From assembly GCA_950097015.1 (NCBI GenBank), contig CATNEN010000029.1, positions 5,518,001 through 5,582,000 of the forward strand: 64,000 bases of DNA, read 5' to 3'. Position 1 is the stretch's first letter, and every line of letters starts with the position of its first letter. Both the position numbers and the translations under genes were made by a program. The notes under the pieces were generated by a model. The model was not told the DNA's origin and did no database searches. It saw nothing but the letters and a program-made list of their open reading frames with translations. Source of the DNA: Macrostomum hystrix. Its lineage: Eukaryota; Animalia; Platyhelminthes. Of the stretch, positions 334 through 60,632 are shown piece by piece.

Positions 334-3300
334 ATGAGCAGCAGGCACCAGCGCCGTCAGTGTCCACGCCTGCTGGACTATGTGGTCCTGGTGGGCCCAG
401 ATTCGCAGGCCATTGTTTCTGGATCGGACCCAGCCTACACGCGACCCCGCCTCCTTCGTCGCTATCCACCCCTTGATCACGCCGACTTTTGTCTACCGCC
501 AGACATTGTGCACTTTTGCCAGCCGACCGCCTCTTGGCCAACAGCGTCTGGCAGGAGCTTCGCCTTCACCCTCACGGAGAAGGACTCGGGCATTGTGCGC
601 CACGGCGCGTGCCTGGCATTCTCTGTTGGCTCTCCGCCGCGCCCACTCAGCCTGTGCGCCGTTGCTCATCATGCGTTCTACGCAAAGCTGACCGAGTGCC
701 TGCGAGTGCTGCGAGCCATTGTGGACGGATTCGGGTGCGTCGGGGTCATTATGGGCGATGGGAGAATAAACCAGTTTTTAGTGTTCAAAATTGTCACTGG
801 CTGAGTGACAAAAGCCCTAAAAGAAACTATGACTAAATGAATGCTCTGAGATCTCAGCGATAAAGCTTCAGAAGGGAAATTGAACCTTCAGGAAAGCTCA
901 ACCTGCTCCAGCCTCCAGTTCTCACAAACTGGTCTGCCTTCTCATTTCCTGGGAAGCAGCTTAACTGTACCTTTACTGTACATCTGTGTGCTTGCAGCCT
1001 ATCAATGTAGATAAAGAGTCTCTAAAAAATAAATTTTCACTTTTACACACTCTAGAGCATGCCCTTATACTATGAGTAGCATAGTCGGGTTTTCGCACCG
1101 AATTCCCTGAGCTCGGATCCGCATCGAAGTTTAGAGCAAACCCCAAAGGCACAGTGAGTGTTAATTGCCTGACGATGAGACAGTCATGACATATGTACTC
1201 ACCCTATGTGAGTGTATGCGTGCGTACAGAATCGCTTAGGCTGAAGATGCAAAGGATCGGCAGGCAGCCCAATGATGCGTCATTGCCCACAGCCACTGTA
1301 AACATTGGACCAATTGTCTATTACTATGAGTAGGATAGTAGCACAGTGCGTACATTCCATTGCCTCCAAACAAACCGACAGTGACTCAGTGTGGCCTCTG
1401 CTGACCGGCTGGCTGGCCCCGGATTCTGCCAGGGAGCCGGCCCTAAGCAATGCCCGCTCAGTGGAAACCTGGATTCTCCGCCTCCTGTCCGCTCCTGCAC
1501 CTGTGCCAGGCGTCTCCAAGCTACAGGTGAGCAAATTTTTCCGTCTTATACCCCTCACCGGTATTTTAAATATCCACAATTTTTTCTGTATCTCCCAAAA
1601 GTATTCAACCAATCGTCATGAAAATGCAGAACACGGGCAAAAATTTTCGCTCTATCCGATGAAACGTCTTCCAGAATCACCAAACATCTTCCAGAATCAG
1701 CAAACATCTTCCAGAATCACCAAACATCTTCCAGAATCACCAAACATCTTCCAGAATCACCAAACATCTTCCAGAATCACCAAACATCTTCCAGAATCAG
1801 CAAACATCTTCCAGAATCACCAAACATCTTCCAGAATCACCAAACATCTTCCAGAATCACCAAACATCTTCCAGAATCACCAAACATCTTCCAGAATCAA
1901 CAAACATCGGCATCGTCGAGATATTCAACGATTCTCGTCGGGGTGTCTGGTGGCAAAAACCATAAATTTAGACACAATTCTTCTGCTCACAAAATTTCAT
2001 AATGTAACCATGTGGACTATTGTTGTTGATTAGTATATTATTAAAAGAATTGTGGATTCACCATACGTATAGAGGTTTATGCAGAGCAATGTTAGTTGTC
2101 CTTGTCACCAGGGTCTTCGATCTCGACGATGCTGACGTCGGACGGCTTTAAAAGTTAGCTCATCGAAAAGGGCGGAAAATGTTGATTCGGATAGTGGAAT
2201 TTCACTTTAATCGGTCTTTCGGTTTGGGAGCTGTCGTGAAGTACGCAGTGGGTTTTTTAAACTGTTAGCGTTTGTCCGCCTGCCCACCTGCCCAGCTCTC
2301 AGTGCTGCCCGAGTCGCTCTATTCGCCCCTGCTGCTGGCTCTGCCGGATCGGTCCCGCCTGCCGCTGGCCGACTTCGCACTGCACACGCCGCTCCTCCGA
2401 CTCGGCGCGCCACTCTGCCTCTCCCTACTGGCCACGCTCCTGCTTGAGAACAAGGTGGCTTTGCAGGCCGCTGATCCCGGCTGCCTGTCCGTCAGCGTGC
2501 TGGCCCTGGTGGCACTGCTCTACCCGCTGCAGTACGTCTTCCCTGTCATCCCGCTGCTGCCGGCTGGCATGACCGGAGCCGAGCAGCTGCTGCTGGCCCC
2601 GACACCCTATCTGATCGGCCTGCCGAGCGGCTTCCTGAGCAGGCGGCCAGGCTTCCGGCTGCCTGCCGAGGTGGTCCTAGTTGAACTGGATTCCGGCAAG
2701 GTCAGCTCTCCGCTGTTCATTGCTTGCTGCTTTGTGGAAGCTGCTAATGTGTCTTTCGACCCTGTTGGGGTGTCTTCTGCCTCCGCTTATGTGTCTTTCG
2801 ACCCTGTTGGGGTGTCTTTTGCCTCCGCTGATGGGTCTTTCGACCCTTTTGGGGTGTCTTCTGCCTCCGCTTATGTCTTTCGACCCTGTTGGGGTGTCTT
2901 CTGCCTCCGCTTATGTGTCTTTCGACCCTGTTGGGTGTCTTCTGCCTCCGCTTATGTGTCTTTCGACCCTGTTGGGGTGTCTTCTGCCTCCGCTTATGTA
3001 TCTTTCGACCCTGTTGGGGTTTCTTCTGCCTCCGCTTATGTGTCTTTCGACCCTGTTGGGGTGTCTTCTGCCTCCGCTTATGTGTCTTTTGACCAGGTTG
3101 GGGTGTCTTCTGCCTCCGCTGATGTGTCTTTCGACCCTGTTGGAGGTGTCTTATGCCTCCCCAGAAGTGTCTGTTGCCCCTCTCATTCGAGTGTATTTTT
3201 ATTTTTCGCCCTAGAGCATAGCTATTTCAAACCGAAACATTCGTCAAACATTCGTCTTTGTATCTAGTTCCTACTAGCTGACTAGTTAGTCATTACCGCT

Positions 3301-6300
3301 GTATGGTGTCAGCTAATTGTCAACGTTTAGGCTTGGAGCTGAGTGTCCGTTAGCGCTTTTTCTACTGGAAACGGGAAACCGTTGGTTGATTATTCCACTT
3401 TTTTAAAAAGTTCTTGTGGCACACCCGCGGAAACTCCGTCCGTGATTTCGTTCCAGCCAATGAGAGAGCTTGTAAAGCCTCAGCCAATGGCAGAGCGGGA
3501 AGGATTAGAGTTTCCTCCATAGCTAGGTTATTAAAAATAACTCTCTTGTATTAGAGTTTCATCCAGCTTAGTGAGTAACTTGTTTAATCTACGAGGCCGC
3601 TGATTTCCTTTTGAATTCGAACCGCATAATTAATATCCGCCCTTTCATCCGCTTACCGCTGTAGTAAACAAAAGGAGTCGATTCTTGATTTTTACCATTA
3701 ACCCCACCAGGTGACATCCGGGGCCTCGAGTCTCTGCCAGTTGAGCAGTCTGCCAGAACAGGAGCAAAAACTGCTCTGCAAGCAGTTGAACCAGGTGAGC
3801 CGCAATTTAAGGGCTAGTTAATAATAATAATAAAATAGTAATCATTGATTATACCTGCCCCAGTCGGACCAGATGTGTAGCCGACAGCACAGCCGCAGCA
3901 AACAGGCTGCGTACGGCTGTTCAGTCCATGGACTGGGGGGACGCCACACCCACCCTCAAATTACCCCAGCTAATGCTGGTACCCATTTAACAGCTCATAG
4001 GTGAACTGAAGCACTGCAGAATGCAGTGTCTTGCTAAAGAATACAAATTGTTCCGGTGTAGTCAGGAATCGAACCCCCGACCTTTAAGTCGTGAGTCCGA
4101 CGCTCTAACCACAATGGAACAGCCCTTTTGGCAGAATAGCCACAACAGGGCAAATTAACTACTAGCGAGTAGTAAGTAATCAATATACTTAAATTATGAC
4201 ACCAAAAGTGCTTCCCCATTCTTCCATTTCAGTACCTGGATGTAAGTTATGGTTGGGCTTGTCTTTTTTTCGGAAGATTTGAATTTTGTGTCGCATCTTT
4301 AATGCATTTTTTAATCTTCTAATAGACATAGCCAAGCGTTTGCACAGAACAGAATTAGTATTTCAATTCCTCGGGGATTGATTGAAGCGTTTTATTCCTA
4401 TTTAACTGATTTTATTGAGTGATTGGCTGCCATTCATTGAATTATTTAACGGAAAGCCATAATTTGCATAACAAATCACACCCTTTGGTAATAACAAACC
4501 TATCACAGTGCCTCCCTGTAGCCATTTAATACGCCTTACTCACTACTAACAAGAGTAACTGCACTGATCACGCGATTTAATAATATTCCTTTAGTAGCTG
4601 CAACCGTTTCGCAATCGATTTTTTTTGTCTAGCAAAATTACCACTTACAGTACTAAGTACTGGGTCATTTTATTTATTGTGGTAACCAAGCCATGCGTGC
4701 TCGAATCCGGCTTTCCTAGTCTCTATTTACAATATAAGATCTCGTTTTCTGATCCAAGATCCCAATATAGAATCCAAGAAATCCCAGATCCCTACTCCAA
4801 GTCTCAGATAAAATTTATAATCCCAGATCCCTTTTCAAAATACCAGATCACATTTCAGAATCCCAGATCCCGTTTCAAAATACCAGATCACATTTCAGAA
4901 TCCCAGATCCCGTTTAAAAACCCCAGATCACATTTCATAATCCCAGATCACATTTCATAATCCCAGATTCCGTTTCAAAATCCCAGATCCCATTTCGAAA
5001 TTCGATCACATTTCAGAATCCTACTCATGATACCAGATCCCTACTCATGATCCCAGATCCCTACTCATGATCCCAGATCCCTACTAATGATACCAGATCC
5101 CTACTCATGATACCAGATCCCTACTCATGATCCCAGATCCCTACTCATGATACCAGATCCCTACTCATGATCCTAGATCCCGACTTTAATCCCAGATCCC
5201 TAATCATGATCCTAGATCCCTACTCATGATCCCAGATCCCTACTCATGATCCTAGATCCCTACTCATGATCCCAGATCCCTACTCATGATCCTAGATTCC
5301 TAAATACGCTCGTAGATTCCCATATAAAAATCTCATTAATTTTATGTCCTATCAAAATGGCCAAACTTTTTTCTTGTTAAAACAAAGAGCTCAATTAGTC
5401 AAATCGACTTGCGCTGTGTTATCCTTATTCATTCGTGTATGCCCCTGATTCGTCCCCTCCTTAAGGCTCTTACCAGCATGCGCGAGAGCCAATCGCAGCC
5501 CATCGCCAACCTGGACTCGCTGGTGGCTGCCCCGTCTGGCCAGCTGCCTCCGCCACCGCCTCCACCGACCTCCATGCGTCACCAGCTGGTGTTTGGCAAC
5601 GATATCGACTCGGTGGACGTCGGGATTCGAATCTCCACCGCCCAGTTCTTTGCTTCGCCAGCTCTGCTAGGTGAGACTTCCGAATGCCTTGTAAGATATT
5701 CCAGTTCTCAAGATTGTTTTGGAATCTTCTCAAGATTGGAACCTTCTCAAGATTCTTTGGAATCTTCTCAAGGTTCTTTGGAATCTTCTCAAGATTCTTT
5801 GGAATCTTCTCAAGATTCTTTGGAATATTCTCAACATTCTTTTGAAGTGTCTCAAAAGTACATCGTCCCGTTACAGGCAACGCTGCTGAGCACAGCCGCT
5901 GCCTTCGCGCCCGACCCAGGCCGGTTGTGGCCTTCCAGTGTCGCGCATTTCTTCGCTCCAGGCCGCGCCGCGCAGTCAGCCAGTTCACCGACGCCCTGGC
6001 CCGCACGCAGGCCATCGAGTGCCTCGCCGAGTGGTGCCATTCGCCGGACAATTTGGCCTACGAGAGAATCGGCACCGGACTCCGCGATCCGGCGACCGTT
6101 GGCGACAAAGCCAAATGGTTCAGCCGGGATCTGCGTCGCGTCTGTCACGATTGCTGCGACGGTGAAGGCGCCGCGGCGAGGTTTCAACCAGTCTGGCCGA
6201 CCGCCGATCCGTCAGCTGAGCTCGAGGCTGGGCCCGCCGCGGCTAGTTCTGGGGCGGCGCCGCCGCTGCCGCTCGACCGCAGTCTGGCCGACGGCGACCA

Positions 6301-9300
6301 CGGCGGAGGTCTGGCGGTGCTGAACTCGGCCGAGTTTTCCGCGGCATTTCAGCCACCGAAATTGCCGCCGCTGCCTACGATAGACGGCGAGGACGGAGAG
6401 GGTGACTGTGTCTACAATAGTGGCGACGCCGACAGCATTAGCCAGAGCGGCGACGGCGGCTCGTCAAGTGAATTCAGCGGTGAAAGCGGCGACGATGAGG
6501 TTGACGAAGGCCTTGGTGACTGCGTGAGTGTAGCAATAATTCTACTAGATCCTCACGGTTGGGATGTTATTCTACTAGATCCTCACAGTTGGGATGTTAT
6601 TCTACTAGATCCTCACGGTTGGGATGTTATTCTACTAGATCCTCACGGTTGGGATGTTATTCTACTAGATCCTCACAGTTGGGATGTTATTCTACTAGAT
6701 CCTCACGGTTGGGATGTTATTCTACTAGATCCTCACGGTTGGGATGTTATTCTACTAGATCCTCACGGTTGGGATGTTATTCTACTAGATCCTCACGGTT
6801 GGGATGTTATTCTACTAGATCCTCACAGTTGGGATGTTATTCTACTAGATCCTCACGGTTGGGATGTTATTCTACTAGATCCTCACGGTTGGGATGTTAT
6901 TCTACTAGATCCTCACAGTTGGGATGTTATTCTACTAGATCCTCACGGTTGGGATGTTATTCTACTAGATCCTCACGGTTGGGATATTATTCTACTAGAT
7001 CCTCACGGTTGGGATATTATTCTACTAGATCCTCACGGTTGGGATATTATTCTACTAGATCCTCAGTGTTTCCTCTCCTTTTCAGATGTCCAACAGCCAG
7101 CTGTCGCACTCAATGTCCACCTTAACAGCCAGGTAATTGTCTGCTAAACAAGTTTAGATATACGACAAAGACCCTGGAAATGATATCCTCAATTTTCCAG
7201 GTCCGCACGTTCGGCCATTGCCGGTCAGCCGCCGTCATCGTCGGACTCAGTGACAGACAGCGGCCTGTCTGCAACGATAGGCGGAGTATCTCGAAGCTCG
7301 GTTGGCATAGCCGGGCCTCAGTTCAGCCGGTCTGGCAGCGTTCGCTATTCCAGCACCTCCGATTTGAGTAGCCTGCGCTCACAGGTGCGCTACAGTCACG
7401 ACGATTCGAGCCTCGGTGGTAGAAGCCACGGCAGCGGTTTTCTGTCTGAAATCAGCGAGAGCCTCGGCAATCGGGCTGGTGCCCGCATCGGTGAGGTTTT
7501 GGGTAAGTCAAAACTTATTTTTAACAGTCGGACTAGGGGGGGAATTTTCTCAGAAAATTTTTGGCAATACCTGAATGCTAACAGCGTTGGGTGGTGACTG
7601 ATTGGTTGACAATCTAAGCGATGGTGTCCTGAGGTTGAGCTGCGCCTGTGCCTTCAAGGGCTTGATCAGTGAAATTGGAGAAATTCGCGTCAGGATGTCC
7701 ATTGTGGCCTAGTTCCACCTGTTCTAGCCCTTGAAGGTCCAGCAAGTCCGTCTAGATAAAGGTAGGTGACCACCGAAGACGGAGATGATGCAGGCACATT
7801 TGGGTGACATGCTGATAAATTTTGAAGGCCTGGCAAGGCCGCACTGAGGCGCAGTGCTAATTCGTGTATAGGGAAAATCCGACCTTCGGCCAGAACCGTT
7901 GAATATCTCGACGGTGTGAAGAGCTGGCGACTTGATTCTTGTTTCAGAAGATGCGCAACAAAACGTTGGCCGAGTTTGGTGTGCTTGCGTTGCTCCGTTC
8001 GGGTGCAACAAATTTGTTCCCCCCCTCCTTGATAGTTCTGAGCTCGATTCCGCGGCGGACCACATTCGTTTGGGTCGCAGCCGCGGAGAGAAGGCTTGGG
8101 GGCTTGTAGTGTAATTTACGCCCTTGAGGGTTAACCTCCAAGACACAGTGAGAGTGTGTGGCAGATGTACGCACCCCCTGTGTGGGCGTATGATTGCGTA
8201 CAGTACCTGTGGGCGTGTGTGCTCAGGAGTCAGCGAAACGGGCAGAATTGCCTCATCGCTGGCTGCGGGTGTAGTGTCACCAAATGATGTGCTATTGCAC
8301 ACAGCCCTCCAGCATTTATTATTATTAAAGGGCTAGGCAAATTAATCAATGCACGCCGCGACACTCTCGCAGCTCACCAGACTGCGGTGCGCCGGGGCCG
8401 CCCGCCAGCCACGGTGACTGGCGCTGGCCTGGAGGAAGAGCAGCGCTTCCTGCGCGAGGTGGCCTCCGGGGTGCTCGCAGGCCAGGGCGTCGGCTTCATC
8501 ACCAAGTCGCTACGACTGAACAGCCTGATGTGCCAGGAGCGCTGCCGGGCCCTCCTGCTGGCGCTGCTTCGTCAGCGGCCGCCAAACTCGGCTGCCGCCG
8601 CGGCCGCCAGCGACGCCGTCGGTGCCGCTCGCCTGGCCGACGTTCCACTGCGGCCATCCGTTTTCCGCGGCCTCCTTGACGTCCTGCGCGCTGTTGTCGC
8701 TGGCCTGACCTCGCAGTACTCCAGCAGCAACGGCAGCGGTGGAAGCGGCAGCGACGGAGGAGGCGGCGGCGGCGGCGGCGGCGGCGGTGTAGCCTCCGCA
8801 ATGCTGCTGCTGGAGATCGCCTATACGCATTATTGCGAGACCAGGCAGGCAAGTTCCTGCTGATGTTGGCATGTGTGGCAGGACAAACTACTGAATAGTA
8901 GGATGAATTGCATCCTACTCCTGAGCACACACGCACACAGATACTGTACGCAGGCACACGCTCACACAGGTGTGTTGGAGAGTATGTGTCAATCTCAAAC
9001 AGTGTTGGAGAGTCTGTGAATCTCAAACAGTGTTGGAGAGTCTTTGTCAATCTCAAACAGTGTTGGAGAGTCTTTGTCAATCTCAAACAGTGTTGGAGAG
9101 TCTGTGAATCTCAAACAGTGTTGGAGAGTCTGTGAATCTCAAACAGTGTTGGAGAGTCTTTGTCAATCTCAAACAGTGTTGGAGAGTCTTTGTCAATCTC
9201 AAACAGTGTTGGAGAGTCTTTGTCAATCTCAAACAGTGTTGGAGAGTCTGTGAATCTCAAACAGTGTTGGAGAGTCTTTGTCAATCTCAAACAGTGTTGG

Positions 9301-12300
9301 AGAGTCTTTGTCAATCTCAAACAGTGTTGGAGAGTCTTTGTCAATCTCAAACAGTGTTGGAGAGTCTTTGTCAATCTCAAACAGTGTTGGAGAGTCTTTG
9401 TCAATCTCAAACAGTGTTGGAGAGTCTTTGTCAATCTCAAACAGTGTTAGAGAGTCTTTGTCAATCTCAAACAGTGTTGGAGAGTCTTTGTCAATCTCAA
9501 ACAGTGTTGGAGAGTCTTTGTCAATCTCAAACAGTGTTGGAGAGTCTTTGTCAATCTCAAACAGTGTTGGAGAGTCTTTGTCAATCTCAAACAGTGTTGG
9601 AGAGTCTTTGTCAATCTCAAACAGTGTTGGAGAGTCTGTGAATCTCAAACAGTGTTGGAGAGTCTTTGTCAATCTCAAACAGTGTTGGAGAGTCTTTGTC
9701 AATCTCAAACAGTGTTGGAGAGTCTTTGTCAATCTCAAACAGTGTTGGAGAGTCTTTGTCAATCTCAAACAGTGTTGGAGAGTCTTTGTCAATCTCAAAC
9801 AGTGTTGGAGAGTCTGTGAATCTCAAACAGTGTTGGAGAGTCTTTGTCAATCTCAAACAGTGTTGGAGAGTCTTTGTCAATCTCAAACAGTGTTGGAGAG
9901 TCTTTGTCAATCTCAAACAGTGTTGGAGAGTCTTTGTCAATCTCAAACAGTGTTGGAGAGTCTGTGAATCTCAAACAGTGTTGGAGAGTCTTTGTCAATC
10001 TCAAACAGTGTTGGAGAGTCTTTGTCAATCTCAAACAGTGTTGGAGAGTCTTTGTCAATCTCAAACAGTGTTGGAGAGTCTTTGTCAATCTCAAACAGTG
10101 TTGGAGAGTCTGTGAATCTCAAACAGTGTTGGAGAGTCTTTGTCAATCTCAAACAGTGTTGGTGAGTCTGTAACAACCCTAATCCGGCTAGTCAAACTAA
10201 TCCAGTCCTTATTATTTTCAGAAATCGGACTCCAGTTTTGACGACAGGCAGGCCAGAGACTGGGACTCCTCTAGCTTCATGTCAACATTTAGTGAGTGGC
10301 ATTGTTAATTAGTGTTGTTGCATTGCCTTCTTTGAGAAAAATCGTGCTAATTGTTTAATTGCTGCTTAAAAAATGAAAAAATTCAAGGGTAAATTTCCCT
10401 CCTTTTCATAATTTCTACTCGGATCGCCGAAATTGTCAGTCGAAAGTACGAGTAAATGTACTTTTAACCGTGATTTTAGTTTTCAAAGCCATCTTTGCAC
10501 CGAGTTTTACTCGTTCTCATGTCCCTTAATTTTTCATCTGTTTTTACTTTTTTGCTATTTGTATCCTTAAAATAATGTAAATTTCCCACCCTGCCGGTTG
10601 CTGGAGAACAGACATTGCTGCTTTTTGGTACTTTATTACGTAAAAGCATAGTCATCTTAAAATCCGCTTTAGTGATTTTATAATTTTCTGATTTGATACG
10701 ACCTAAGCGACAGCATTAACAGTTATCCCCTGAACCTTCAGTGCATTGACAGCTATCCCCTGAACCTTCAGTGCATTGACAGCTATCCCCTGAACCTTCA
10801 GTGCATTGACAGTTATCCCCCTGAACCTTCAGTGCATTGACAGTTATCCCCCTGAACCTTCAGTGCATTGACAGTTATCCCCCTGAACCTTCAGTGCATT
10901 GACAGTTATCCCCCTGAACCTTCAGTGCATTGACAGTTATCCCCCTGAACCTTCAGTGCATTGACAGTTATCCCCCTGAACCTTCAGTGCGTCGACAGTT
11001 ATCCCCTAAACCTTCAGTGCATTGACAGTTATCCCCCTGAACCTTCAGTGCATTGACAGTTATCCCCCTGAACCTTCAGTGCATTGACAGTTATCCCCCT
11101 GAACCTTCAGTGCATTGACAGCTATCCCCTGAACCTTCAGTAAATTCCCAGTTATCCCCCTGAACCTTCAGTGAATTCCCAGTTATCCCCCTGAACCTTC
11201 AGTAAATTCCCAGTTATCCCCCTGAACCTTCAGTGAATTCCCAGTTATCCCCCTGAACCTTCAGTGAATTCCCAGTTATCCCCCTGAACCTTCAGTAAAT
11301 TCCCAGTTATCCCCCTGAACCTTCAGTAAATTCCCAGTTATCCCCCTGAACCTTCAGTGAATTCCCAGTTATCCCCCTGAACCTTCAGTGAATTCCCAGT
11401 TATCCCCCTGAACCTTCAGTAAATTCCAGTTATCCCCCTGAACCTTCAGTAAATTCCCAGTTATCCCCCTGAACCTTCAGTGAATTCCCAGTTATCCCCC
11501 TGAACCTTCAGTAAATTCCAGTTATCCCCCTGAACCTTCAGTAAATTCCCAGTTATCCCCCTGAACCTTCAGTGAATTCCCAGTTATCCCCCTGAACCTT
11601 CAGTGAATTCCCAGTTATCCCCTGAACCTTCAGTGAATTCCCAGTTATCCCCTGAACCTTCAGTGAATTCCCAGTTATCCCCTGAACCTTCAGTGAATTC
11701 CCAGTTATCCCCCTGAACCTTCAGTGCATTTAAACTTTAATAGTTGATTTCAATATAAGCAACAATATTCAACAGTTACTATACAGACCCATCGCATTAC
11801 GCATCTATATTAAAGTTGGTTGGCACTGTTTGCTTAATTAGTTTTACCTCTTGTTGTAGCGGATTGGTTTAAAGAGATTCGCCGAGACTCTGAAACCGCG
11901 GGTGCCTCGCGTAGAGCCAGCCAAGGTTTGTCGAAAATCACTAGATGCAATCCTGAGCTGTAGTTGTTTATTGTTTATTTGTTTATTATTTACTGTTTAG
12001 ACTATGACTGCAAGCACAATGACAAAAAAATCAATATAAAAATCACAGTTGCTCACAATAACAGTTATTTCACGATTTTCTAACCTCCCATCTAACACGA
12101 TTTGATTACCTAATTGCACCTAATTGCCTTGATTGACCTGTTTTGTCATTGTATTGCTTCAACAAATTTTACCTGCCGCACTAAACCTTTTTTAACCGTA
12201 CTTTCAGTGGCCATTGCGGAGTCTAGTATGACACCTTTTATCGTCAATCTTAACCTAACTCAATAGATTTTTTTATCTATAAGAATATATAATTCATTTG

Positions 12301-30310: not shown

Positions 30311-33300
30311 TCAAAGTCGGTCCACTATCCAATTTCCCTGCTCATTGTCGGCAGTGTTGAGCTCTGGCTCAAAGCTTGCCGCGGCGGCGGCTGCGGCTGC
30401 CTCCTCTTCGGCGGCCAGACGGTCGCGCAGTTCGCCAAGCTCCTGACGCCAGGCGGCCTCGATGTCTCGCGCCTGGTCGGCCTCGCGCTCGTGCATATGG
30501 CGCCTCCGCGCCGAAATCTCGCGCTCGGCCTCCTCGGACTGGCGCGAGGCGCGCTTGTCCAGCTCGGCCAATTCGCGGGCGGCCTTGGCCTCCAGCTCCG
30601 ACAGCAGCTGGCGGGTCCGGTGGGCCTCCGATTCGTCGAATTCGCGCTGCAGTCGGCGCTGGAGAGCCGCGTCCTCCGATGTGATTGGCTGGTTGGGCGG
30701 GGAAGGATGTGATTGGCTGGTTCGGCGGGGAATTATGTAATAGGCTGATTGGGCGGGGAAGGATGTGATTGGCTGGTTGGGCGGGGAAGGATGTGATTGG
30801 CTGGTTCGGCGGGGAATTATGTAATAGGCTGATTGGGCGGGGAAGGATGTGATTGGCTGATTGGGCGGGGAAGGATGTGATTGGCTGGTTGGGCGGGGAA
30901 GGATGTGATTGGCTGGTTGGGCGGGGAAGGATGTGGTTGGCTGGTTGGGTGGGGAAGGATCTGTGGCTGGATGGGCGGAGAAGGGATACTTCACGAGGGA
31001 TTTGGGGATCTTTTACTATGGATTATGGGATAATCAACAAAAGTGATTTTTTAATTTCACGACGAATTTAAAACTTTGAAAATTAAAAATTATCTAGAAT
31101 ATTTGGGAAGGATTGAGCAAAGTTAAACGAGAGATTCGGGGATCTTTAAAGATGGAATTAGGAGTCATCAAATGAGGATTAGAATTGTCTTATTGGACAG
31201 AGCATTTTGACTGGGTTTTGACATATCCTATAATTTTTTTAGACTACATTGTTGATCCCAAGCGAACCTTCGATCCCCGTGACGGCAGCTGCAGGCTGTC
31301 CCTGAAGGCGCTGGCTCGCACCGCTCGCTCCTCCTTGATGAGGCGCGGCCAGCCGCGGCGCTCCTCCACCTGGCGTCGAGCCAGGCCGTCTCGCTGCTCG
31401 TCCAGCCGTCGGCGCAGCTCCGCCGCCTCCAGCTCGCTCCGCTCATCCGCCAGCCGACGACGAAGGCGCCACCGGTCAGCCAGCTGACTTAGCCGGAGGT
31501 CACGCACCTCGGCTAGCCGGCGCTCCTCGGTTTCGGCTCGCTGACGACGCGCCCGAGACTCTAGTGCCAGTCGGGCTCGCTGACGCTCGCCGATTGAAGT
31601 CCTGGCGGCGTCGGCTTCTCGCTGAAGCCGCTGGAGGGCCGCCTCCAGCTCCTGTTTAGCCCGGGCCGCCTCGACTGCCCACCTGGCCGACAGCCGGTCT
31701 CGCTCCTCCGCTTGCACGGCGTCCAACTCCGCTTCAGCTTTGTGCTGCGCCCGTCCGCGCTGCTTCTGCTCGCGGAGCTCGGCACGCCTGACAAGTTTTG
31801 GGAGAATTGCGGATAGTTGCTAAGGGATTAGACGTGGTTGCTATGCGGTTAGACTTGGTTGCTATGGGGTTAGACTTGGTTGCTATGGTATTAGACGTTG
31901 GTCGCTATGGGACTAGATATGTTTGCTATGGGACTAGATATGTTTGCTATGGGATTATACGTGATTTCTATGAGATTAGACGTGGTTGCTATGGGATTAG
32001 ACACGGTTAATATAGGATTATACATGGTTGCTATACTGTATTTTAAAGCGCACCTGCTGAGAAACTGTTCCTGCAACTTGCCCTCGTTCCCCTTGCGTAC
32101 AGTGCGCATTGTGGTCGTAACAATGACATTGCCGCTGTCGTCAGTAAACACCCGCTTCTTGCTGATCACCACGGAGTCAGACTGCAAAAGGTAGCGGTTT
32201 CAGTGTTTACCTTTACGTTTTAAGAGACTTTCGACAGTTGCTACTATCAAAGCAGGAAGGCAGTAGAGTGAAACGCGAATTATTCATGCACAACAGTTTC
32301 TACGAGTACATTATTGTTTCTAAAAGCTAGAAAAAATCTTACGTCAGCCTCCGCAACGGAGGGAACCGACTTTTCGATGTCCGCTGTCATGCTGCCACCG
32401 CCACCGCCGCCGCTCTCCAGCTGAACTATTGTGAAGTCGATTCCACCAGCAAGGGCTTCCAGCTCATCTTGCATCACCAGCAGGACCACAGCAGGTATGC
32501 TGGGATCGCAGCCCTCGTCGGCGAGGACCTCCTCCAGAAGCTCCTGACACAATGAATCAGCCAGAGCATCCGTCCATTGTGACTGCTGTTCAATTGAAGT
32601 CTAAAAATCGAACAAATGAAAAAAAATTGACTTTTCTTAGAGTTTAAGAAGCTAAAAAATAAAAAAAGCTACTGACAGCAAAACCTGGCGGCGGCGCCAG
32701 TGTCTGATTTGGCTTCGACGCTGTTGAAGGTTTTGGCTTCGTTGCCGGCGGAAGCGTCGCTTTCTGTGCCGCTGTCGGTGTCGATGTTGGTGTCGGTGTC
32801 GATGTTGGTGTCGGTATCGATGTTGGTGTCGGTGTCGATGTTGGTGTCGGTGTCGATGTTGGTGTCGGTGTCGATGTTCGTGTCGGTGTCGATGTCGGTG
32901 TCGGTGTCGATGTTGGTGTCGGTGTCGATGTTGGTGTCGGTATCGATGTCAGTTGCGATATCGGTGTCGATTTCAGCGTTCCTTTCGGTGTCGATGTCGG
33001 CGTCGATGTCGCTGTCGAGATTGGTTTCGCCGAAGCTGCCGCCGGCCTGACCTCGACCTCCGGAGTAGCGCGCAGCTCGGAGACCAGGTTGCGCATGACC
33101 CGCCGATCGGTTTCGCTCAGTCCGACAAGAAAGTCAGCAGCCAGTAGTTCGCCAGTTTTCGCCCGCATTTCGGGCGGCTTAACCAAGCACCTGGATAGAA
33201 AGCTGTGAAAACTCGGCGACCACATGCTCTGCTTTGCAAGCCTGAAATTAGAAGGTAAATTCGAGGTTGCGCCATATCTGTTGACTTGCTAAAGCCGGCT

Positions 33301-34611
33301 CTGACTCACTTTGGCGGATCTCCTTTAATGACGCGAATGATGACCCGAGCCGGCTGCAGGTTGTGATGCGGCGGCAGCATCTGGGCCAGCTCGATCAGCG
33401 TCACTCCGAGGCTCCAAACGTCGGCGCGTGAGTCGTATTTCTGAATATCTGTTGTCTCGCAGGCCATGACTTCGGGCGCCATCCAGTACTGCGAGCCAAT
33501 GAACGTGCCGCGACGAGTCTCTGGCGAGTCGCCGATTGCCGAGACGCCAAAGTCTGCCAGTTTCACAACGGCGTCGGCGCTCAGCAAAACGTTTCCGGCC
33601 TTCACGTCGCGGTGTATGATGCCGTTTCCATGGAGATAGTGCAGCGCCCGGGTCATCTCCAGGCAGACAAACTTAATTTGCGGCTCCGACAAGCCTCTGC
33701 GAAGGGGGCGAGTGGCAGAGTGGTTAACGCGGTCCCTGAGCTGGATTCCGCGGCGAGGCCACATTAATTCTGGGCGCAGCCGCGGAGAGAAGGCTTGAGG
33801 GCTGGGCTTGTCGTGCAATTTACGCCATTGAAGGAAAACCTCCAAGGCACAGTGAGAGTGTACACAGCCTGACGATGAGAAAGTCAGGGCAGATGTACAC
33901 ACCTGCGTGAGCGTATGCCTGCGTTAAGTATCTGTGTGCGCGTGTGCTCAGGAGTCAGCGAAATGCGCAGAATTGCCTCCTCGCTGGCTGCGGGTCTAGT
34001 GTCACCAAATAATGTGCCATTGCTGCCCTCCTGTAATTATAATTAATAATCCTCTGCGAAGTGGGGGAGGTGGCAGAAAAAAGGTAGGAGCTGCCTTGTC
34101 GACAGTGGCAGAAGGAACTTCGCTCTCACCTGTCCAGCTCCATCATAACAGAGTCCAGAGCGCCCAGCTCGCAGAACTCCAGGCAGAGCCACAGTTTGCT
34201 GCTATGCAGAAACGCATCCAACAGGCGAGTGATGTTAACGTGGGAACACCTGGCCAGGACGCTCACCTTGTGAATTAAGCGCGGACCAGATCAGAATGCT
34301 TTTTAAAGTCTTAGATTAAAATCATAAAAAATGTTGGATAATGCTCGAATTTTTTTGCTCACCTCAGTCATGCTCTCTTCCAGATCCTCTTCGCTGTCGA
34401 TGGACACCTGCTTGATGGCGGCCAACTCGCCAGTCTGCAGGTGTTTAGCTCGGAACACCTCGCCGAATGCGCCATCGCCGAGCTTCTCCTCCCTGGCCCA
34501 GGTGAGGAGGGGATCCACGCCGTGTTTCACCGCCGGGTGCAGCCGCAGCTTTGGCGACTCATTTTGACGCTTGCCCAATCGGCCGTGCTTTAGAAACTCC
34601 AGTAGGCCCAT
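30311..34611 (-). CDS. SLK: STE20-like kinase of SLK/STK10 (LOK) type, ~868 aa
   Basis: Exons 34611-34363, 34266-34130, 33696-33310, 33241-32677, 32600-32343, 32181-32054, 31787-31268 and 30673-30311 are phase-consistent. Motifs LGDGAFGEV, AAIK, HRDVKAGNVL, LADFG, YWMAPEV and DVWSLG, followed by the SLK-like KKRVF...VTTT/RRAELRE segment and a coiled-coil tail. Confidence 0.88.
30678..30960. repeat. Minisatellite, 28 bp GATGTGATTGGCTGGTTGGGCGGGGAAG, SLK intron 7
   Basis: About 10 copies abutting the 3' splice site. Confidence 0.93.
31826..32030. repeat. Degenerate 21-bp minisatellite (TAGACTTGGTTGCTATGGGGT), SLK intron 6
   Basis: About 10 diverged copies. Confidence 0.8.
32776..32995 (-). 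repeat. Coding 18-bp repeat encoding (TPTSTP)n in SLK exon 4
   Basis: GTCGGTGTCGATGTTGGT tandem inside the open reading frame. Confidence 0.85.
33705..34050 (+). mobile_element. tRNA-headed SINE, family A, with 11-bp TSD
   Basis: A-box-like TGGCAGAGTGG, degenerate B-box, shared body (GGCACAGTGAGAGTGTACAC...CCTGACGATGAGAAAGTCAGG...GCCTCCTCGCTGGC) and AAT tail. TSD CCTCTGCGAAG at 33694-33704 and 34051-34061. Confidence 0.9.
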
Positions 34612-43868: not shown

Positions 43869-45778
43869 ATCGTCTGTCTCAAGCCCCAGATTGGCCAGGT
43901 CAAACACCAGCGCGTGACTTGCTCTAGCTCGCCTGGCCACAATGAGCCGGCCGCAGGCTGCGTCAAAGTGCACCGCCCCAATGTCGGCGTCGTTTCCGGC
44001 GTCTACGCAGCCGGGGCAGCCGCAGGCGCAGGCGAAGCCGCAGGGCAGCTCGGCCAGCCGCCGCCCGTTGGCCAGATCGCAAATGGCGACACATTTTCGA
44101 CGATTCGCGCCAACGCTGTTGACGAACAAGCAGCCGTCAACGCTGTCGCCGTCGCTACAGGCGGCCACGGCGACAGTGATAGGCGAGGTGATGTTAAATA
44201 TTAGTTCGGTGACGCCATTGTTCTTTCCGGGCTCGAGCAGATGCCGACGATCGATCACCAGCACGCAGCTGGATGCGCTGTCGGCGACGCAGACGCGACC
44301 GGCGCCAACGGCGATCGCCCTACCGTAGCGGAGTTTCGAATGTCGAAAGACGCAATCAACGTCGGCCTTGCCCTCGCCGTTGTCGTCAACAGAATTCGCT
44401 GGAACCAAACGTTGCCGGCGCCAACGAAAGGCGCGCAGCTCAGTGCCGTTCGCAGCTAGCGCGAAGACACAGTCGCCGTTACCCGAGGCGTCGGAGCAGA
44501 CAGCATTCGGCCTGGGAATTCCGGTCAGACGCTGACGGCAACGACCGTCGAGGTCGCAAACCACCAGGCGATGTCGGTAGAAGTCAGTCAGCACCACCAG
44601 CGGTCTCCCTGTGAAAACATTCGCGACGAAGCCTCAGACAAATAGCTCTAATCTGTTGCGAGAATAATCGATTACTGAGCTAAAAGTACATATTAATAAT
44701 AAAAATAATTTGCTACACTATAGACCCGCAGCCAGCGAGGTGGCAATCCTACCCATTTCGCTGACTCCTGAGCACACACGCACACAGATACTGTACGCAG
44801 GCATGCACTCACACAGGTGTGTACATCTGCCCTGACTTTCTCATCGTCAGGCAGTGTACACTCTCATTGTGCCTTGGAGGTTGGCCCTCAATGGCGTAAA
44901 TTGCGCGAAAAGCCCCCAAGCCTTCTCTCCGCGGCTGCGCCCCAAATGAATGTGGCCTCGCCGCGGAATCGAGCTTAGGGATTTTAGCGCGAGAGGCAAA
45001 CGCGATAACCGCTTTACCACCGACCCCCACAAAAAGTAAATTTTACCATCGACGCCACTGTTGTCGCCTCGGCCGCCAGGCCAGGCTAGGCAGAATCCGG
45101 AAATGGTGTACTCTTCCTCGCCTAAGTCGGGCGCAAGCACCGGTCTGGCTGTGTCGCCATCCTCGCCGGCGACAGTCGCCCACAGCCGCTGATTATTGGC
45201 GTCGCGTAGAATAGCCGCCACTCCGCTGTGCTGGCCGCCGACACCAGTTTTCGCCGTCGCCGTTGGCCAGCACTGAAAAGTGAGCGGCGGCCCGGGAAAG
45301 TGCAAAACTGCTTCTGGTCGAAGCAGCTCCTGAGATTGTCGAAGCCGACGCAGCAGCGGCACCAGGCTCAGCTGGCCCTGTCGGGCGAGGTCTTTGTTGT
45401 CGACTGACTTCGGCCACAGGCTGAGGAGATCGGCCAGGGCGGCGAGCGAGCTGCGATCAAATTTGCAGTGGATTGAATCTATTAAGCTATTTATACAAAT
45501 TATGCTACTGTAAGCAGTGCGATGCAGACATGTCCTCACTGATGCGGCGAGGTCCCGCGGCAGTGGGCCCGACACACCGGACAGCGAATCCTTGGCCTGT
45601 CGAGCCCGGCCAGTTCCCAGCCATCGCCTGGAAGGCAGCGCCGACAGACCGCGTGCTGGCAGGGCTGCAGAGACTGCGGGTCGCGGCACAACCCGCCGCA
45701 GGCTGGGCACGCGGCAAGGCCGCGAATCTCCGCCAGCACCGAGTCGCGATTGGCCGGGCGGTAGCTGCCGTCGGTCAT
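43842..45778 (-). CDS. C3HC4 RING E3 ligase with C-terminal NHL-like beta-propeller (malin/TRIM-NHL-like, no B-box seen), ~469 aa
   Basis: Exons 45778-45540, 45450-45047 and 44608-43842 total 1410 nt in frame. RING is CPAC-x11-CQH..C..C-x17-CPVC followed by HSLAALADLL. NHL-like blades: VVLTDFYRHRLVVCDLDG, PNAVCSD, GRAIAVG..RVCVADS. A likely 5'UTR intron spans 47029 to ~45824. Confidence 0.75.
44690..45028 (-). mobile_element. SINE family A filling intron 2 of RING-NHL gene
   Basis: Same head and body as the 60242-60632 copy, with an AT-rich tail. Confidence 0.85.
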
Positions 45779-60241: not shown

Positions 60242-60632
60242 ATAATAATAATAATAATAATATTAATAATAATAATAATAATTGCAGGAGGGCTGCGGAC
60301 GATGGCACATCATTTGGTGACACTAGACCCGCAGCCAGCGAGGAGGCAATTCTGCCCATTTCGCTGACTCCTGAGCACACACGCACACAGATACTGTACG
60401 CAGGCACACGCTCACACAGGTGTGTACATCTGCCCTGACTTTCTCATTGTCAGGCAGTGTACATTTCACTGTGCCTTGGAGGTTGGCCTTCAAGGGTGTA
60501 AATTGCACGACAAGCCCCCAAGCCTTCTCTCCGCGGCTGCGCCTCAAATGAATGTGGTCTCGCCGTGGAATCGAACTTAGGGACCTTGTTGCGAAAGGCA
60601 AATGAGAAAACCGCTCTGCCACCGACCCCCCA
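60242..60632 (-). mobile_element. SINE family A, full length, with 14-bp TSD
   Basis: tRNA-like head GGGGTCGGTGGCAGAGCGG...GTTCGATTCC and (AAT)n tail. TSD TTGAAGCTTCCTTA at 60228-60241 and 60633-60646. Confidence 0.9.

Follow-up and report, generated by a model that had tools for sequence, protein, structure and literature searches.

The window, a stretch of 64,000 nucleotides from Macrostomum hystrix, carries on its minus strand a protein kinase gene with an antisense SINE on the border between its second intron and third exon (Table 1). Analysed exon by exon, the gene groups with the SLK/STK10 (LOK, STE20) kinases: its kinase domain is N-terminal, with Pfam Pkinase matches on exons 1-3, and among its solved relatives STK10 and SLK rank first (E 5e-46), with the next kinases at 5e-35. 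A C-terminal coiled-coil PKK domain (PF12474) is encoded by the exon at 31795-31268, where its score of 25.9 bits exceeds the cut-off of 25, and the domain is also present, weakly, in the orthologues of Macrostomum lignano, the species from which the nearest database proteins come. Exon 3, which is 87-89% identical to M. lignano, contains the motifs HRDVKAGN, DFG and APE. A long low-complexity (TPTSTP)n run, open in more than one frame, lies in exon 4 (32690-33040, minus strand); M. lignano P0124 enters a DTDT frame at its C-terminus, a switch that suggests frame slippage or model errors in the repeat.

Table 1. Features of the kinase locus and copies of the SINE family in the window. A slash marks an exon boundary.
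Feature	Coordinates	Strand	Details
Exon 1	34363-34611	-	ATG 34611-34609; aligns from M1 with M. lignano P0124; Pfam Pkinase 2-42
Exon 2, 137 nt	34130-34266	-	ends ...GAGCTGGACAG in phase 2; Pfam Pkinase 50-89
Original intron 2, 76 nt	34054-34129	-	donor GTGAGA at 34129 (GT 34129-34128); acceptor CAG 34056-34054
Exon 3, 387 nt, kinase catalytic core	33310-33696	-	Pfam Pkinase 95-200, E 3e-31
Intron 3, 68 nt	33242-33309	-	exon 4 starts at 33241
SINE copy, 346 bp	33705-34050	+	antisense to the kinase gene; nhmmer E 1e-111 against the family profile
Upstream TSD copy, CTTCGCAG/AGG	34051-34061	-	putative decoy acceptor and copy of the first 3 exon bases
Downstream TSD copy	33694-33704	-	acceptor CAG 33699-33697 and first 3 bases of exon 3
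SINE-head-like 17-mer, TGGGGGAGGTGGCAGAA	34062-34078	+	directly after the 3' TSD copy; 13/17 match to the SINE family head
In-frame TGA after the upstream acceptor	34002-34004	-	
TTACAG, candidate cryptic acceptor	34031-34036	-	within the reversed tail of the SINE; likewise gives a stop (frame by hand)
TTAAC, branch-point-like motif	33723-33727	-	A at -28 of the downstream acceptor; SINE D-arm-like region GGTTAACGC
Further SINE family copy, full length	60266-60631	-	11-bp TSD AAGCTTCCTTA
Further SINE family copy or fragment	44705-45028	-	
Further SINE family copy or fragment	8037-8328	+	
Further SINE family copy or fragment	1130-1306	+	
Further SINE family copy or fragment	8916-8975	-	

The element is one of a family for which the M. 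hystrix genome has 3,419 candidate copies, 40 of which were scored and found to be 85-91% identical to the copy at the kinase locus. The family profile, built from 24 aligned copies, has a consensus of 369 bp. The family has an A/B-box-like head, with (ATT)n tails and TSDs of 8-18 bp seen in 24 copies. Many dispersed, short, non-coding copies with a simple-repeat 3' tail and TSDs of variable length, 11 bp at the kinase locus, are what is expected of a SINE. The consensus displays box-A-like and box-B-like motifs (TGGCAGAGCGG and GTTCGATTCC), and the label 'tRNA-derived' refers to these two motifs only, because ARAGORN and Rfam called no tRNA either in the kinase-locus copy or in a full-length copy. 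Within the window, the profile picked up five additional copies or fragments. The profile also matches M. lignano NIVC01000606.1 (locus L046) weakly at 11809-11987 (E 8e-18), so the family or a relative of it is older than the split of the two species. When an intron born from a SINE was sought among 30 sampled loci, the best candidate (L017) was rejected because it lay in a stop-free tandem repeat and not in an exon.

The kinase-locus copy has the head GGGGGCGAGTGGCAGAGTGGTTAACGC and, on the plus strand, a degenerate tail of the (ATT) type. On the minus strand its flanks carry the 11-mer CTTCGCAGAGG, exact at 34061-34051 and at 33704-33694, and these are the only two matches within the window even with one mismatch allowed. 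The antisense element is therefore placed on the intron/exon border with the acceptor inside its TSD, and the sequence-only reading was correct in holding that the insertion had duplicated the acceptor of exon 3, since the exact repeat CTTCGCAG/AGG stands on both flanks. The splice-site coordinates also agree with its statement that removal of the SINE and one repeat restores an intron of 76 nt. An 18-nt deletion in the head, which it had taken to be specific to this copy, is indeed so in a genome-wide search for the junction, which is found exactly at two genomic sites only, the copy itself and its duplicate (described below). In the same copy the box-B-like motif is GCTGGATTCC instead of GTTCGATTCC (33731-33760, plus strand), and the deletion leaves box A and box B only half as far apart. 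Given the altered box B and the halved spacing, Pol III activity of the copy has probably been lost.

The 17-mer that follows the 3' copy of the repeat is in register with the true head that follows the other copy, so the repeat is effectively 28 nt long, with 24 positions identical. A match to the head at 13 or more of 17 positions is found for 6 of the approximately 128,000 17-mers in the window, three of which are real heads. The window has five occurrences of the sequence GTGGCAGA, two of them within the 76-nt intron, where 34105-34112 is the second. Taken together, the 17-mer and the second GTGGCAGA are far more than chance gives; the 17-mer may have originated by an earlier insertion at the same nick site, by homology-assisted 5' joining, or by chance. 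Two extensions of this observation were tried and rejected. Homology-assisted integration does not appear to be a habit of the family, as a head-like motif within 90 nt after the tail was found in none of 31 other SINE copies. The proposal that the whole 76-nt intron is the relic of an old SINE received no support from nhmmer, and the local alignment score of 11 was equalled or exceeded in 480 of 2,000 shuffles, so that homology is not supported outside the 17-mer.

From the donor, only the join from 34130 to 33696 keeps the kinase frame (ELD-R-GLSEPQIK), as in the M. lignano proteins (...MMELDR/GLSE...). An exon that started at 34053, behind the upstream acceptor, would read R-GLLIIITGGQQWHIIW, 17 codons, and then reach the TGA in frame, the premature stop that had been predicted from the sequence. 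Rescue of this product by a second intron was considered and discarded by hand, since the sole GT before the stop (34005-34004) leaves a 48-nt piece whose junction recreates a TGA. The two acceptors are alike in pyrimidine content, with 16 of 20 positions at -4 to -23, the upstream tract being T-rich and including a run of T6. A yUnAy motif is found for the downstream acceptor only (TTAAC), with none in the upstream intron. The downstream site takes its C-rich pyrimidine tract and its TTAAC from the reversed SINE head, as proposed; the further proposal that the head deletion had created the TTAAC fails, because the family consensus itself reads GGTTAACGCG, and roughly half of the aligned copies have it. 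Nor was the distance from TTAAC to the AG changed by the 18-nt deletion, because the deletion lies 5' of the motif in the sense of the gene.

Folds of the 76-nt and 433-nt introns had no excess stability relative to shuffled sequences (z -0.5 and -0.7, respectively), and a small hairpin formed by TCTGC and GCAGA does not discriminate between the acceptors, because it can form at both alike. When exon 3 and the M. lignano orthologue were used as queries, protein searches returned no M. hystrix product in the collections searched. The reversed SINE (33697-33923, minus strand) is open for 76 codons in the frame of exon 3, and splicing to the in-frame AGs at 33803-33802 or 33737-33736 might in principle insert 35 or 13 codons.

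An empty site is available in M. lignano, in which two orthologous loci, NIVC01002574.1 (L045, via P0130) and NIVC01000606.1 (L046, via P0271), are without the SINE. At both loci exon 2 ends with GAGCTGGACAG/GTGAGAG and exon 3 starts after ...GCAG/AGGCCTGTCGG, which is the same exon 2/3 junction (GACAG/gtgagag...gcag/AGGCCTGTCGG in M. lignano) as in M. hystrix, with a single acceptor. The presence of this junction without the SINE at both loci indicates that the insertion is lineage-specific and that the intron is older than the SINE. A diverged kinase paralogue of M. hystrix on C38 (G000:C38:7586000-7595999, L037 3042-6006), 72% identical in exon 3, is without intron 1 and has an intron at the ELD(K or R)/G junction, shifted by one base (phase 0, not phase 2) and 2.2 kb long, swollen by two tandem-repeat arrays. 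Because the intron is found both in M. lignano and in this paralogue, the upstream acceptor is the original one. For the same reason, the logic of introner-type intron gain that had been seen in the locus does not apply to it: the intron is present in the two SINE-free M. lignano loci and in the C38 paralogue, and the element and its TSD do not supply both splice sites, the donor at 34129 being old and shared with M. lignano. The intron was already there and was lengthened, from 76 to 433 nt; none was gained.

A 28-nt unit, ctcagtgacaggtgaaggtcaggccagc, is repeated in tandem within the orthologous intron of M. lignano, with two copies at one locus and about six at the other, and the intron is thereby of the 'accordion' kind (L045 6121-6259; L046 approximately 3511-3765). 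In the M. lignano protein PAA56785.1 (P0130), residues 1-65 correspond to exon 2 and the start of exon 3 read in wrong frames, after which the kinase frame is entered; this N-terminus is a mis-predicted gene model, not another gene structure.

The insertion is also older than the description of the locus as a snapshot of transposon domestication had implied. The kinase-locus SINE is 93% identical to the consensus, compared with 94-99% for 28 other full-length sampled copies, and with 12 private substitutions in 314 bp, the highest number among the 29 sampled copies, and 3 private indels, it is the most diverged of them. Moreover, it lies in a duplicated segment of at least 47 kb (window 1-46896 versus G000:C29:443031-491992, approximately 98.7% identity, or approximately 1.3% diverged), the arms of which are on the same contig, in the same orientation and approximately 5.07 Mb apart, with alignment gaps at tandem-repeat blocks. 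The duplicate carries the whole kinase gene, with the twin of the SINE locus near 478,400-479,900 of C29, and the SINE and its TSD are identical in both arms. Either a true segmental duplication or retention of a second haplotype may account for this pair. The presence of the SINE and TSD in both arms, together with the high divergence of the element, implies that the insertion predates the duplication or haplotype split, several-fold. Part of the divergence may be older than the insertion, if the element came from a divergent source copy, in which case the time over which constraint was tested would be shorter.

Throughout this time the gene has remained under constraint. The seven exon pieces tested in frame, 1,935 nt in all, are free of stops and align colinearly with the protein of the M. 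lignano orthologue, and dN/dS relative to M. lignano is 0.10, a coarse comparison of rates because synonymous divergence is saturated (dS approximately 1.2). With amino-acid changes polarised by the outgroup P0127, which is the orthologue of the paralogue, there are 25 private changes in M. hystrix versus 19 in the SINE-free M. lignano. Neutral decay at the private divergence of the SINE (3.8%) would be expected to add about 53 amino-acid changes, with a probability of 0.08 that no stop arose, and at the indel density of the SINE the probability of no indel lies between 0.004 and 5e-8. The exons of the two C29 copies are free of indels, and their intact structure is the same in both. Open exons, a low dN/dS and an unaccelerated protein together imply that the downstream acceptor very probably works and that the SINE is intronic. 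Because the gene has been kept functional with the SINE in place, we infer that this acceptor is used productively.

Our analysis thus favors, as the probable explanation, that the SINE is spliced out with an enlarged intron by means of an acceptor rebuilt by the TSD, the old acceptor being left as a decoy. At insertion, the gene-sense strand would have been nicked after ...CAGAGG, three bases into exon 3, and the nicked strand would have primed copying of the SINE tail by target-primed reverse transcription. A cut in the other strand 11 bases away, followed by fill-in, would have duplicated the last 8 bases of the intron and the first 3 of the exon. The exon-proximal copy could then serve as a complete 3' splice site, with the AG coming from the duplication and the tract and TTAAC (-28) from the reversed head. 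Productive mRNA would be made by joining donor 34130 to 33696, with the SINE now within an intron of 433 nt, while the original acceptor would survive upstream as a decoy. Use of the upstream acceptor or of the TTACAG would lead to a premature stop and probably to a degraded transcript. The choice of acceptor, and the proportion in which each is used, is what we infer here from a locus whose anatomy, empty site, age and constraint are observed.

The same anatomy has been read as a hypomorphic allele, that is, a dying copy in which the original acceptor is mainly used, translation ends at the stop at 34004-34002, little kinase is made and the C38 paralogue covers the function. The intact upstream acceptor, with its 16/20 tract and T6 run, at the end of a minimal 76-nt intron that an intron-definition spliceosome might prefer, is in keeping with such a fate; if function were partly lost, the C38 paralogue and the second near-identical copy could compensate, and three of the five coding differences between the two C29 copies are at first or second codon positions (by hand). 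We consider it unlikely, because the 1,935 nt of coding sequence have acquired no stops or frameshifts although the SINE has acquired 12 private substitutions and 3 indels, because the protein, with 25 changes versus 19, is not accelerated relative to its SINE-free orthologue (dN/dS 0.10), whereas neutral decay would bring about 50 changes in addition to stops and frameshifts, and because both duplicated copies retain the same intact structure. If both acceptors were used, their ratio might instead tune kinase dosage as an NMD-coupled alternative 3' splice-site switch. Competition between the acceptors is plausible, since they share 24 of 28 upstream bases and are equal in pyrimidine content, and the stop in the upstream product lies approximately 690 nt before the next exon junction. 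A regulatory role of this kind is nevertheless distinctly improbable: the double-acceptor arrangement is absent from M. lignano, so that it is no conserved device, and leaky use of a decoy requires no function. In addition, M. hystrix has 34,543 genes with 5 introns each (PMC10468722), and with approximately 172,700 acceptors and at least 3,419 SINE copies, about 27 cases of a TSD over an acceptor are expected in the genome by chance, if tolerated.

Splicing to a third acceptor inside the SINE would place an in-frame insertion in the kinase domain. The open frame from 33923 to 33309 runs through the SINE and contains the two in-frame AGs given above (by hand), but both of these AGs have purine-rich, poor tracts, and an insertion after ELDR would break a kinase core that runs uninterrupted in the Pfam domain and in every relative; such an outcome is very improbable. 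That the SINE or the repeat is an artefact of an assembly from which separately assembled haplotypes were purged (PMC10468722) is more remote again, almost to the point of being negligible. The same structure was assembled twice, in arms that differ elsewhere by approximately 1.3%, and the element has the normal ends of its family and a TSD.

Introners, which are known from algae and fungi, are transposon-born introns for which the TSD supplies splice sites. The rebuilt acceptor at the kinase locus resembles them in that a duplication made by the element would supply a splice signal and the element would be removed from the mRNA. It differs in that only the acceptor has been duplicated, the donor is old and no intron has been gained. 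The SINE could not be removed as an intron of its own, because the junction between TSD and tail, AGG/ATTATT, provides no GT. In the exonisation of antisense Alu and other SINE copies, the reversed element gives a pyrimidine tract and cryptic acceptors (PMC7349775), and the reversed kinase-locus SINE likewise contributes a pyrimidine tract and a branch-like motif, although at this locus it is the reversed head, not the tail, that provides the tract, and the element would be kept out of the mRNA.

Among known systems, the nearest parallel is the merle allele of dogs, in which an antisense tRNA-derived SINE-Cf lies on the border of intron 10 and exon 11 of PMEL/SILV and a 15-bp TSD holds the acceptor (PMC7349775). 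Merle transcripts are spliced at one of two places, the acceptor next to the exon or a cryptic site that follows the reversed tail, and in cryptic-merle dogs use of the exon-proximal acceptor removes the antisense SINE completely (PMC7349775). The two loci share a border-sitting antisense SINE with the acceptor in its TSD, of 15 bp in merle and 11 bp in the kinase gene, and at both the exon-proximal acceptor leads, or is predicted to lead, to the normal product and sites nearer the reversed tail to an aberrant one. In merle, a long poly(T) precedes the competing cryptic acceptor, whose use varies with tail length and whose product stays in frame (+52 residues), whereas the kinase-locus tail is a short, degenerate (ATT) sequence and the competitors would be the duplicated original acceptor and the TTACAG, both of which lead to stops. 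Furthermore, merle is a recent dominant mutation whose splicing is known from RNA, while the kinase insertion is old and apparently fixed, and its splicing is a prediction.

A broader possibility, which we regard as tentative and rather doubtful, is that the reversed SINE head (...GCGTTAACCGCTCTGCCACCGACCCCC) constitutes a ready-made branch point and pyrimidine tract, which would make the family an animal retroposon 'introner' system. If this were true, any antisense insertion with an AG in its TSD would create a working acceptor, the family could replace acceptors and create new introns genome-wide, and the head-like 17-mer might mark repeated use of the same site. The single locus is a tidy example of an effect that is already known. 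It suggests, with an empty-site control in a relative, that a gene can survive a retroposon that lands in the first codon of one of its exons: the acceptor would be rebuilt by the target duplication, the reversed SINE head would supply the rest of the 3' splice site, and purifying selection on the gene has continued. Its value is collective, as thousands of these SINEs coexist in M. hystrix with introns that are very short, and RNA-seq and Iso-Seq data are publicly available for the species; a genome-wide count together with junction reads could measure the rate at which TSD-borne splice sites rescue exonic insertions and the way in which decoys are handled.
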